Source: Bugula neritina | Lineage: Eukaryota; Animalia; Bryozoa | Assembly (NCBI GenBank): GCA_964035545.1 | Contig: OZ037767.1 | Coordinates: forward strand, 14,512,998 to 14,576,997 | DNA: 64,000 nt | Direction of reading: 5' to 3' | Part shown: piece by piece, positions 6,049 to 57,575 of the stretch | How positions within the stretch are numbered: the stretch's first letter is position 1 | How the letters are laid out: each line of letters opens with the position of its first letter | Made by a program: the position numbers and the translations under genes | The notes under the pieces: model-generated | Seen by the model: the letters and a program-made list of their open reading frames with translations, nothing else | Told to the model about the DNA's origin: nothing | Databases searched by the model: none

Positions 6049-9000
6049 CTAGGTTTTAGATAAATTTAGAGCGCCACAATCATTTTCTAAGAACGACTGT
6101 TTGTCTGGAGAAGTAGCAAAAACACGAGGTTCATTTTTAGGCAGCGTAGACTGATTTCCTGACAGACTGATGTTCTTTGAAGAAGGGGGTGTTGTAGAGG
6201 GAAACCAGGGGTGCAGCAAATTAGCTTTTTGGTTATCAATGTCGTTGGAGATTGGTTGGAATGTATGTGAGCTGAGAAATTTAGCAAAGCCTTGTGAAAA
6301 CATCGCAGGAAATCTCTGGGCCTGTAGACCTCTTAACAAAGCTGTAACAAATATACGATTCAAATTTCGTTAACATATTACAGTATGAGTGTAGAAGTTA
6401 TGACCTAAACATATAAGAAACTCACTATGTAAACTTTTGCATGAAAAATCAACACCAATAAGTTAGGTTTTGTAAAGTTATATTTTACAGTAAGAAGAAT
6501 TTTTTTTAAAAAAGGGAGAAAACTTGCAGCATAAATAAGACAGAGCTTTTTTGCAGAACTAAAAAAATAGATCATATAACTTTAATGATCCAGGAAGCTG
6601 GACAGTAATGCACACATCAGCTGGTATGCTTACTTGATAGTAGAAGCTTTGGAAAGTACTTTGTTTAATAATATTTATTCATAAACTGCAGTTAAGCGTT
6701 CTAATCTAAATGCTGGTTGGCTGAAACTTGGGTTTAGTGTTCTTACCTAAATGCTGGTTGGCTGAAACTCGAGATGAAATGTGTGGAAGTTTGCCTGGAG
6801 GCAAAAGAAACTCTCGTGAAAACGCAGGAGGCCTATTCAAGGAGAACCTTTCAGTGTGGCCATCTGCAGACATACACCTCCTCATATGCCTCTCCATTGT
6901 GCTAAAATTATAAATACACAATAAAGATTACAGCTCAGTGTCGAAAAGTACAAAGTTGCAGCCAAAAATTGATACATTTGGAAATGTGCCAACTGGGAGA
7001 TAATTTTAAAGTTTTGTTTACATTTCAAATCAGTTGAAGTATTGTTTAAATAAATATTTCAAAAGAAAACAAACTTAGCTGCTACTGCTGTTGCTGCTAT
7101 TACACTATCACTATATTACTGCTACTACTGCTACTGTTCCACTACCACTGCTTCCACCACAACAACCACCACTACCACTACTACCACTACTACCACTACT
7201 ACCACTACTACCACTACTACCACTACTACCACTACTACCACTACTACCACTACTACCACTACTACCACTACTACCACTACCACTACTACTACCATTACTA
7301 CTACCATTACTGCTGTATTGAGTTACTGCTATACTATGGATATTCTGACAGAATCAACTTAGCTGCTAAATTATTAAACGGAGCTGCACATACGCTGGGT
7401 TCTGGAATGTAGCCCCACACACTCGGCACCTGTGACTGCCTCCATGTGTCTTCTTATGTCTGGTTAACTTGCTAGACTGAGCACATGAATACGGACACAA
7501 GTCACACTTGTAGGGCTTCTCTCCAGTGTGACTTCTTCTGTGAACTTTGAGATTGCTTTTGTTGGCAAATTCCTTTAAAAGTATCATAGCATTTTCATTG
7601 TATTTCATTCTATGCATGAAAATTCTAAAGCACTACAAACTCTACTTATGGCAATTCTAAAATTTCATGACTATAGGCATATTTGAATCTGAAAACATTT
7701 CGGGAGTCATTTAAGTGTACTTAAGCTGTGCGGGGACTTTTTTCCTAACAGCCCATCGCTCATTTGCATGTAATGTCCATAGTTTACTGTATACATCCAA
7801 GTTAGCCATATTTTATATTTTGGAGTTGTCTATGCATAGGACATGTGTTTATTAGATACGCATACTTCAAGTTGATCAAAGGAACGGTTTTGGTTATGAA
7901 TGTGTACTCATTTTAGACATTACCATTTCAAAATGAGTTTATTTTAAAATCCACGTATAATTTTTGACGAAAACTTGATTCAAGTTAGTTTATCAACTAA
8001 ACTAAAAAAGTGAATTCAATTCTTACCTTTCCACAAAATTCACATTTGTCAATTTTGCTAGATGGCACTGGGCGGATAGAATGTTGATCTGATTTTGGAG
8101 AAGGAAGAGTTGACAAATCCCTGACATTGTTATTAGAAAAATGGGAGTTGTCTATCCATGGTCTATGTACACCCGGGAACTCCAAGTGTTTCCAAGAACC
8201 TAAACGAATCAATTAAAACAAATTCTTAGAAGTTTTGCAAAAATATGCTTAGGCTGTTCAGTTTTTTTCATAGTAAAACATTTATAGGAGACAACTCCAG
8301 GTGAACATTATAAGAATATGGAATACGAGTTAAAATAGCTAGACAGCAAATTGTTACTGCATACAGTTGGTATGTCCTTGTTATTTGAGAACCATTTGTT
8401 ATTCCAAGAACCTAAACGAATCAATTAAAACAAATTCTTAGAAGTTTTGCAAAAATATGCTTAGGCTGTTCAGTTTTTTTCATAGTAAAACATTTATAGG
8501 AGACAACTCCAGGTGAACATTATAAGAATATGGAATACGAGTTAAAATAGCTAGACAGCAAATTGTTACTGCATACAGTTGGTATGTCCTTGTTATTTGA
8601 GAAAGATATATATATATATATATATATATATATATATATATATATATATATATATATATATATATATATATATATATATATATATATATATATATATAAT
8701 TATATATATATATATATATATATATATATATATATATATATATATATATATATATATATATATATATATATATATATATATATATAGCTATAACAAACTA
8801 ATTGATTATGCTGGAGTATTTCATCAGAACAAAAGTCTAGAGTATGAATAAATTATTAATTATTATGAAATTTAGATAAATAAGCTACGTGAGTGCATAG
8901 ACCCTGGTACTTGGCCCGCAGCCAGACTAAATAGTGGCTATTTATGTACTCAGACTACAGGGTAATAGTGGCATAGCTATAGCAGGTCACGTGCAGCTGC

Positions 9001-55200: not shown

Positions 55201-57575
55201 CATAAGAAGACACACGGAGGCAGTCACAGGTGCCGAGTGTGTGGGGCTCCCTTCACGAACTCAGCGTAAGAACTTTTTAGTTGTACGATTACGTAATCAC
55301 TGTTATCACACAATCTTAACAAGAAATGTATGGCGATGGTTTAAAAGCTGTCTGTGTTTGTGTGTTGGCAGCCCTTGATAGGAGTTGCAGCGTTCACCAG
55401 TTAGATATGCTTTACTCTTGGAGATAAACTGAGAGTCTAATAGAGGAAATATAAACCAGATATTTTAGTAGTCATTTACTAGTACGTGCAAATATAAAGG
55501 CATTTTATGTTGGCAGTCTATCTGTTCTTTTTCCTTGAGTAGTGAATGGATATTATACCGGCGAACATTTTAGTTAAAAATAGTTATTTTAATATTTAAA
55601 TCGAATTAAAAATTCTGAAAAATCAAGAATATTAATGAGGGATCTACAGTTGTTGTTGATAAAGTGTTTTATGCGGCTCAAAATAATGATGAATATATTA
55701 AGCTATAAAGATAATATTTTTAGTTAGCTAGTACTCACTACTAGTATCTACTAATATAGTACTTACTGCTAGTAGTCACTACTATTACTCATTATCAGTG
55801 CATACTACTAGTACATGCTGCCAGTAACTACTGTTAGTACTCACTACTAGTACCTACTACTAGTAGTCACTACTGATACCCACTGCTAGTACTTACTACT
55901 AGTACTCACTACTAGTACTCACTACTAGTACCTACTACTAGTACTCATTTAGAAGCAGTAGTGAAAAAATTGAGATAGCCTAAGCTTTTTAAGTTTTTTT
56001 TTATTAAATTTTGGCTTGGGGTGCTAGTAAAAATTTTTGCAAAAACATTACTTTTTTTGCTACATTTCTAATCTAGAACACAGGTTTTTCTCAAATTCTG
56101 CACCTACCTCGCTATTAAAAGCCCCTACTAGTAAATATTTTGCTGAGTATTTATGGCTGGTTCTACTCAAAGTATTTTTCAGGACGATGGAGAGACACAT
56201 GAGGAAGTGTCTGGAGGAAAACAGGAAGTTGAGGCTGACTGACCCTGCTGCCGGGGGACAGCCTCACCATATGCAGTCCGTGACCGGTTCTATGATGCCA
56301 ACGCTGTCATCTCCTCACCATCAGCATATGGGTGGGTGTGGCTTAGAGTTTGTGGGTGTGGCTTGGAGTTTGTGGGTGTGGCATGAAGTTTGTGGGTGTG
56401 GCTTGGAGTTTGTGGGTGTGGCTTGGAGTTTTTATCTGGAACTTTACTGTAATAAATATTGTACTATAATAATAAATAATTATTCTAATAAACATTATAA
56501 TGTTATATTAAATATTGTAATAAATATTATAATAAATATCATAATTAAATTATCATAGAACTAAAGAGTATAATAAATATTTCAACAAATTTCAATAAAT
56601 ATCATAAAACTATTCAAATAAGTATGACAATTATTATAAGAAGTTATTTTGTGTAACTGTGTAAGTGAATTATAACATGAAGCAGTGCTGGATTATTCTT
56701 ACTTATTTTGTTCTATTGTGTTGACATGACATGATATGTGAAAAAAGGGCACGGTTTGATTTTCATGTTGTTGTAGGACGCGTTTTAGTGTTTAGATTGT
56801 GCAAAAACTAAAATGTTTAGCTGAATCAAATTAATCACTTTGATTGTCAATTATGCCAGATAAAATGTGTTAAGATCCGCAAAATCAGAAGAATGATGAT
56901 TTTGATGTAATGGTTGCAAAGTTTTTTGTGCTTTGGCAACTGTTGCTTTTATTAAAAGGTGTGGCATGACCTGGTTATTGCTCTCTATACAAGTACCAGT
57001 ATCTGTCAAAGTGCATTCCAAAAATTTCAAAACAGGAAGCATACTGTGAAAACTGCTTTTTATTGTTTGAGTTTGTTGAAATGTCATTATCTTCTTTAGC
57101 AGGTGTTGGTAGACCAACTCTCTCTCATTTTCCATACAGACACCCCTTCAATATGCTTCCCCAAAGTCCGCCGTATTCAGCACCACTACCTACTCTACAA
57201 ACTCAAACTTCCGTCGCATCAATGCCACAGTTTCCTGCCACCGTGGCTCCACTCCCGAGATACAACAGATACCCATCTGCGACGTCGCTAGCGCCCTCTG
57301 ACGACTACATGCCCACTGACCTCTCACAGTGTAAAACCTCTACACCCTCCACTCCTACTACTCCGGCACAAGAACCTCTAGAGTACCGTAGATATACTAG
57401 CAATGACTCAGTGCCATCCGTTCCTCGACCTGTCCTTGACACGGCCATAGAGGAAGATGCTTGTGGAGCTCTGAATCTCTCCTCCAGATCTATACGCACT
57501 TCCACGAGTACTGATCCAACCCGGCCTCCATCTACGAGTAGTCGTACTCCTTCTGTAACCGAGCCCGACAACTAG
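34236..57575 (+). CDS. bcl11: BCL11-like zinc-finger transcription factor, paralog C (~747 aa, ~14 coding exons)
   Basis: Hand-built model: 34236-34368 ([12 protein letters not shown]), 38083-38346 ([28 protein letters not shown]), 42426-42563 ([24 protein letters not shown]), 44204-44291*, 46977-47010*, 47456-47507*, 47932-48030, 49369-49511, 53043-53166, 53971-54129, 54589-54794 (...[10 protein letters not shown]), 55087-55265 ([21 protein letters not shown]...[12 protein letters not shown]), 56183-56331 (TMERHMRKC...), 57100/57103-57575 (NAGNAG acceptor). * = tentative. The finger cluster closely resembles vertebrate BCL11A ZnF4-6. Confidence 0.88.
34401..34480. repeat. 16-bp tandem repeat (gacacatcatgtagct, ~5 copies) just inside gene C intron 1
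   Basis: Direct reading. Confidence 0.9.
36752..36943. repeat. Degenerate tagtactatagca-type minisatellite
   Basis: Direct reading. Confidence 0.8.
42426..42563 (+). CDS. Gene C ZnF1 exon (not in the ORF track)
   Basis: ttttag|AT TTG AGG...CGT CAA G|GTGGGC; 138 nt; encodes [27 protein letters not shown]. Confidence 0.85.
43928..44080. repeat. Degenerate ~20-bp tandem repeat (tttgacccaatactg)
   Basis: Direct reading. Confidence 0.75.
44685..44875. repeat. Low-complexity (ctctttagttata) repeat
   Basis: Direct reading. Confidence 0.9.
55087..55265 (+). CDS. Gene C DNA-binding zinc-finger exon (179 nt)
   Basis: Acceptor cccag|GTG, donor GC|GTAAG. Same length and phases as the gene B exon at 7572-7394. 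Confidence 0.93.
55728..55947. repeat. Degenerate (actactagtactc) repeat
   Basis: Direct reading. Confidence 0.85.
56332..56431. repeat. 20-bp tandem repeat (gtgggtgtggcttggagttt x5) beginning exactly at a gene C splice donor
   Basis: Direct reading. Confidence 0.92.

Follow-up and report, generated by a model that had tools for sequence, protein, structure and literature searches.

We analyzed a 64,000-nucleotide (nt) stretch of the genome of the bryozoan Bugula neritina (GenBank GCA_964035545.1, contig OZ037767.1, positions 14,512,998 to 14,576,997 of the forward strand; hereafter the window), which carries three predicted genes, A, B and C, that are homologous and BCL11-like as judged from their sequences. 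Genes A and B lie in tandem on the minus strand, with A upstream and in direct orientation, and B (minus strand) and C (plus strand) are arranged head to head, as seen in a six-frame comparison. One exon of these genes, referred to here as the focal exon, contains a tract that is almost identical in B and C and that in all likelihood has been exchanged repeatedly among the three paralogs by gene conversion.

The first coding block of each gene opens with MSRRKQD (A, 2695..2739, minus strand; B, 26028..26072, minus strand; C, 34236..34280, plus strand). A second block matches the BCL-11A-like CCHC finger PF25491, for which the cut-off is 27 bits, with 39.8 bits in A (1230..1331, minus strand), 41.2 bits in B (24685..24786, minus strand) and 32.8 bits in C (38163..38264, plus strand). 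Each gene also has another N-terminal finger, which is found as a C2H2 finger block at 21700..21783 (minus strand) in B and at 42437..42520 (plus strand) in C. The C-terminal part holds a triplet of C2H2 fingers that is split over three exons, the first ending in ..CE[FY]CGK, the second being the focal exon and the third starting with TMERHMR.C.., so that the focal exon encodes the helix half of C-terminal finger 1, the whole of finger 2 and the first half of finger 3. When the three fingers are read across the three exons, the best named protein matches carry CE[FY]CGK...[32 protein letters not shown], the BCL11-type recognition helix. The predicted last coding exons are open frames at 6052..6369 in B (minus strand; ending ..CGALNLSKT and a stop codon) and at 57063..57575 in C (plus strand; ..CGALNLS..), and gene C continues past 57575. 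Gene A leaves the window at its left edge, and its focal exon lies on the minus strand about 9 kb left of the window (window -9112..-8934; G000:C3:14503882-14504060, where G000 is the analyzed assembly). A (C)GALNLS or EALNLS motif near the C-terminus is kept in all three proteins (6061-6087, minus strand, in B; 57453-57479, plus strand, in C; approximately -11100 in A), the tails of which are otherwise unalignable; this motif may resemble the PxDLS-type docking motifs of the co-repressor CtBP.

The exon limits were predicted from splice consensus and homology, and gene identity was read from separate exon blocks rather than from a full-length spliced model. An exact database look-up of the open reading frame (ORF) upstream in gene C returned no record. 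When the 60-residue exon was compared with protein representatives, the best 150 matches were all long poly-zinc-finger proteins with summed scores, which do not discriminate orthologs. The bryozoan genes resemble vertebrate BCL11A and BCL11B in their MSRRKQ N-terminus, their PF25491 CCHC finger and their C-terminal C2H2 triplet with the [10 protein letters not shown] helix. They differ in forming a local cluster of three, whereas vertebrate BCL11A and BCL11B are on different chromosomes, and in having extra introns that split the finger triplet.

The focal exon is 179 nt long in both B (7394..7572, minus strand; recognized by an AG acceptor, a GT donor and its frame) and C (55087..55265, plus strand; recognized by splice consensus and by an ortholog at L017:27021-27199, described below). 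The two exons are inverted and approximately 47.5 kb apart, and the whole genome contains only three copies, those of A, B and C. Pairwise alignment of 7351-7629 (minus strand) with 55030-55308 (plus strand) showed that a 159-nt tract of B (7411..7569) is identical to that of C (55090..55248) at 157 positions. Both tracts translate into the same 53 residues, with a nonsynonymous divergence (dN) of 0. Two mismatches remain, both of them synonymous CpG transitions at third codon positions: exon position 81 has CCG/CCA (55167 in C and 7492 in B), and exon position 129 has CAT/CAC (55215 in C and 7444 in B). In a self-BLAST of the window at word size 9, the tract scored 292 bits and the next-best match between B and C at most 34 bits; at this word size no further nucleotide similarity between the two genes was found above chance, introns included. 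An earlier note on this DNA had reported the 157/159 match over 53 codons, its two synonymous differences and the lack of similarity between the flanking introns, all of which alignment, translation and self-BLAST reproduced. Its description of the match as exon-restricted holds in that exchange lies inside this exon, but the tract is sub-exonic: two of the three bases of the first exon codon differ between B and C, as do five of the final 17 nt, and the exon ends read AG/GTG...CAGC/GTAAGA in C and AG/GAA...CAGC/GTATGT in B (slashes mark the splice sites). The ends of the upstream exons (..CEFCGK in B, 8027..8062, minus strand; ..CEYCGK in C, 54759..54794, plus strand) are unconverted, as is the start of the downstream exon of B (A/TMERHMRRC, the second half of finger 3; 6874..6903, minus strand). 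Directly past the downstream intron, the counterpart of the latter in C (A/TMERHMRKC; 56181..56210, plus strand) already shows three silent differences from B within the seven common codons, TMERHMR.

Synonymous divergence in the tract is far below that in the rest of the genes. Gene A matches B at 145/159 and C at 143/159 tract positions, and the synonymous divergence (dS) of the tract is 0.065 between B and C, 0.33 between A and B and 0.43 between A and C. Over the other conserved blocks (98 codons), NG86 dS is undefined, that is, saturated, and dN is 0.42-0.49. The same contrast emerged from counts of residues that are identical between two paralogs and encoded by the same codon: 53/55 in the focal exon vs. 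25/48 in the other blocks for B and C (Fisher p = 9e-8), 44/53 vs. 21/45 for A and B (p = 2e-4) and 41/52 vs. 15/50 for A and C (p = 1e-6), so that only 30-52% of identical-residue codons match outside the focal exon. The earlier note had stated that neighbouring conserved coding sequence differs at many silent sites, which the saturated dS outside the focal exon confirms. It had also proposed that dS be calculated per exon among A, B and C; the values are low in the tract only, and no other exon has an equally low dS. Exchange with A is older or patchier than exchange between B and C.

To place these comparisons among species, we refer to the window's lineage as sp1, to a sister lineage as sp3 and to a more distant species as sp2. 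A profile search with the three CCHC-finger exons gave one match, which led to the sister lineage, and the sp3 contigs were found by searching with neighbouring exons rather than with the focal exon. Contig L017 comes from NCBI assembly GCA_010799875.2, which is also labelled Bugula neritina. It aligns colinearly to window positions 26022-57334 at a mean identity of 84.3% and carries the C focal exon of sp3. Gene B (window 8658-5406) has a colinear counterpart, 79-85% identical, in L013, a contig from a JGI metagenome. The two most likely represent one lineage, since a JGI contig of the same project label as L013 is 98.6% identical to L017 over 12.5 kb. In the remainder of the focal exon, as in the introns and adjacent exons, B of one lineage groups with B of the other and C with C, in keeping with orthology. 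Inside the tract, seven sites (exon positions 18, 21, 39, 45, 54, 159 and 162) instead group the two paralogs of each species (B1=C1 vs. B3=C3), a pattern that occurs at no site outside it. The orthology pattern (B1=B3 vs. C1=C3) occurs at positions 2, 81, 163, 165, 169, 170 and 175, one inside the tract and six outside (Fisher p = 0.0047 for the two patterns inside vs. outside the tract), and the third possible pattern occurs neither inside nor outside. With sp2 as outgroup, the derived states common to paralogs are those at 18, 39 and 159 in the window's lineage and those at 21, 45, 54 and 162 in sp3; the derived state at position 18 is common to A, B and C. A test that the earlier note had suggested, whether the exon clusters within species, thus comes out seven sites to one in favour of species clustering in the tract of B and C, with flanks that follow orthology.

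The C orthologs of sp1 and sp3 differ at 10/159 tract sites, all of them third positions (10/53), with dN 0 and dS 0.40, and the introns adjoining the C exon show approximately 18-25% mismatch between the two lineages, so that tract dS is similar to or higher than intron divergence. The tract differs between species at a neutral synonymous rate, and its boundaries are sharp, with the sequence beyond them following orthology. The last exchange between B and C in the window's lineage is much younger than the separation of this lineage from sp3. In sp3, the C-context Logan contigs L012 and L014 both stop exactly 32 nt into the exon, at the last 31-mer to include a base specific to C, and the next 30 nt are identical in the sp3 contig in B context; this fits a repeat edge, because a k=31 graph ends where a repeat begins. 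When JGI metagenome contigs were scanned with a degenerate 20-mer for the 3′ end of the B and C exons, all 24 loci returned were chance matches that bear no similarity to the region.

The B focal exon of sp3 (L013:892-1022) has a 48-nt in-frame deletion (16 codons) flanked by CAG microhomology, so that finger 2 lacks its helix and histidines and finger 3 its start. This could be either a real lesion of the sp3 B gene or a metagenome-assembly error. The remaining eight differences between this exon and that of the window's B gene are all silent.

The sp2 sequences are contigs from bryozoan-associated ENA metagenomes. They comprise a paralog X (L008), whose neighbouring exons are closest to C, and a paralog Y (L015 and L016, from two samples and 99.55% identical). 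X and Y share 136 bp of the same exon at 97.8% identity, starting at the acceptor; they are unalignable before this tract and diverged after it, and its 3′ boundary differs from that in the window's lineage. Between the window's genes and sp2, the exon protein is 88-93% identical, but codons agree at only 49-56% of the identical residues, and dS has reached saturation. A further contig, L009 (ENA ERZ4903282; coverage 1.4x), is Y upstream and X downstream and switches paralog inside the common tract. We considered it as a second sp2 paralog with a tract of at least 531 bp and rejected this, as the longer L015 and L016 show 136 bp. L009 is a chimera formed in the common tract, and is an example of the short-read chimeric contigs that arise from such tracts.

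Recurrent interlocus (non-allelic) gene conversion among the clustered, anciently duplicated genes A, B and C is very probably the explanation for these observations. Short non-crossover repair events would copy 130-160 nt of the focal exon between paralogs, a stretch predicted to code for the recognition helices of C-terminal C2H2 fingers 1 and 2. Strong purifying selection acting on the residues of the fingers may keep local nucleotide identity high enough to start homologous repair, and every conversion event would renew that identity, while the introns and linker exons probably diverged long ago past the point of pairing. Exchange would be confined to this stretch because only here does protein constraint keep enough nucleotide identity. 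Species clustering in the tract together with orthology in its flanks bears out the central proposal of the earlier note, that non-allelic conversion in this exon was recent or recurrent. The role that it gave to inverted orientation finds no such support: orientation is not decisive, because A, which is direct to B, and C, which is inverted, both exchange with B.

The low silent divergence could in principle be mistaken for constraint at the level of DNA or RNA (splicing enhancers, RNA structure, a small-RNA target or extreme codon preference) that preserves silent sites without any exchange, and long identical runs common to all three paralogs, in an exon that is GC-richer than its surroundings, would suit that account. 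We give it next to no credence. The ten third-position changes between C orthologs of sibling lineages, at about the divergence of the neighbouring introns, run counter to it, as does saturated dS relative to sp2 in spite of a protein that is approximately 90% identical, and constraint cannot yield seven sites with a species-specific silent state in both paralogs. Equal nucleotide conservation between orthologues, which the earlier note had named as a pointer to such constraint, was looked for and was not what the C orthologs showed; constraint at the DNA level is excluded, as it is already contradicted by the data. A single recent replacement of the exon in the window's lineage would account well for B and C differing at just two sites, both of them CpG transitions. 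It is nevertheless improbable, given that paralog-common derived silent states arose in both the window's and the sister lineage, that A shows intermediate divergence and that the tract in sp2 is a separate one, ending at another 3′ boundary. It is more improbable still that one exon copy was overwritten by the sequence of the other during assembly or consensus building and that the true copies differ more, even though the tract is short and both copies lie on one chromosome. The published assembly, tzBugNeri2.1 (216.00 Mb; 320 scaffolds and a mitochondrion), is a hifiasm assembly of HiFi reads at 132x, and its description does not mention a polishing step (PMC11480708); such reads are many kb long and extend through a 159-nt repeat into introns that are unique. 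The two differences that remain between B and C are paralog-specific states also present in the C ortholog, and because they carry these C-specific states, the assembly evidently keeps the copies apart. Furthermore, the same pattern occurs in independent assemblies of two other lineages, and gene A, at 90% identity, was left unhomogenized.

A different question, raised by the earlier note's view that conversion keeps one shared DNA-recognition module, is whether selection itself maintains the homogenized state, in that three factors must read one DNA motif, so that converted alleles are favoured and divergent finger alleles purged. The dN of 0 both in the B-C tract and between C orthologs is compatible with this, as are the coverage of the recognition helices of two fingers by the tract and the recurrence of homogenization in three lineages. 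We consider it unlikely, although less so than the other alternatives. Purifying selection on each copy combined with homology-dependent conversion gives the same pattern, and neither the third finger nor the boundaries of the tract are the same in all paralogs or in all species. Conversion as a neutral by-product is expected to give the same pattern as adaptive homogenization, because conversion needs local identity, which is kept only in this constrained stretch. If selection were responsible, repeated conversion across Bugulidae would hold three BCL11 factors that differ in their regulation to a common surface for reading DNA, and such conversion, lasting beyond species lifetimes, would be an example from nature of modular concerted evolution, with the recognition module of a transcription factor as its unit.

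Several points weigh against recurrent conversion as the explanation, or limit the evidence for it. A maximum-likelihood tree of the 159 nt splits sp2 from the rest (100/99), but no grouping among the copies of sp1 and sp3 has more than 80% support, because the tract offers too few sites to resolve them, and so the argument is built on site patterns. L013 lacks 48 nt of the tract, so that 131/179 columns carry four-taxon information, and separate assemblies supplied the B and C exons of sp3. Position 81 follows orthology in spite of its place inside the tract, with common changes on both sides of it, which points to either several short or patchy tracts or repeated CpG mutation. The correctness of both copies in the window depends on the published assembly method and on the indirect arguments above, and the analyzed assembly (216,009,554 bases in 321 sequences) is presumably tzBugNeri2.1. 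Finally, A, B and C are predicted genes, with exon limits taken from splice signals and homology.

We also made several observations on the lineages and on the surroundings of the genes. The two assemblies labelled Bugula neritina diverge by approximately 16% over 28 kb of colinear sequence (window 26022-57334 vs. L017), which fits different cryptic species of the Bugula neritina complex. The NCBI assembly is 98.6-100% identical to JGI and Logan contigs, and sequencing runs X2 and X3, labelled Bugula neritina, contain just 3% of the window's 31-mers. The C-context contig L012 (SRR4020080) reaches only 95.3% identity to the NCBI assembly, compared with 98.6-100% for its neighbours, and mixed colonies or divergent haplotypes may be present in the sister-lineage samples. 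Between the starts of B and C, a 2-kb stretch (26576-28579) has no counterpart in the sister lineage, which has 17 nt there. It contains a 135-amino-acid ORF (27839-28246) that is rich in Cys, Lys and Tyr and has no Pfam match, and the stretch may be a mobile-element insertion. An intron of gene B carries a perfect 202-bp direct repeat (8190-8391 and 8402-8603, with 10 nt between the copies), followed by a long TA-rich palindromic microsatellite (8606-8792). Long tandem or low-complexity arrays occur in introns and intergenic space at 30307-30850, at 17027-17384 (45-nt period), at 13118-13464 (GA-rich) and at 7091-7321.

Mosaic conversion of tandem paralogs is familiar from human gamma-globin HBG1/HBG2 and from L/M opsin exons. 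Interlocus conversion and concerted evolution of duplicates are well described, in a review (PMC3924837) and in studies on Drosophila (PMC2588116) and Caenorhabditis (PMC3966223). The known cases share with ours short non-reciprocal tracts between nearby paralogs, low tract divergence, clustering within species and dependence on local identity. Most catalogued cases, however, are young duplicates that are similar throughout, whereas here an island of 130-160 nt stands in genes whose silent sites are saturated everywhere else and whose remaining sequence is unalignable. A model of HMA4 (bioRxiv 10.1101/2025.10.29.685298) describes mosaic divergence of tandem paralogs through conversion. Mosaics of this type are similar to ours in that conversion affects part of a gene and leaves sharply bounded homogenized and diverged segments. 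They differ from ours, which involves transcription factors, three members in mixed orientation and a homogenized part that is the DNA-recognition surface. In a literature search, the titles and abstracts of the top-ranked papers containing both terms gave no report of conversion between BCL11 genes.

The mechanism itself is known, and the case is a tidy addition to interlocus conversion. Its localization is unusually clean, with a near-identical island of 130-160 nt, both boundaries visible and independent replicates in three lineages. Trees or dS values calculated from this zinc-finger exon would misdate the duplication of the genes as recent. Our analysis also documents a lineage-specific cluster of three BCL11-like genes in bryozoans.

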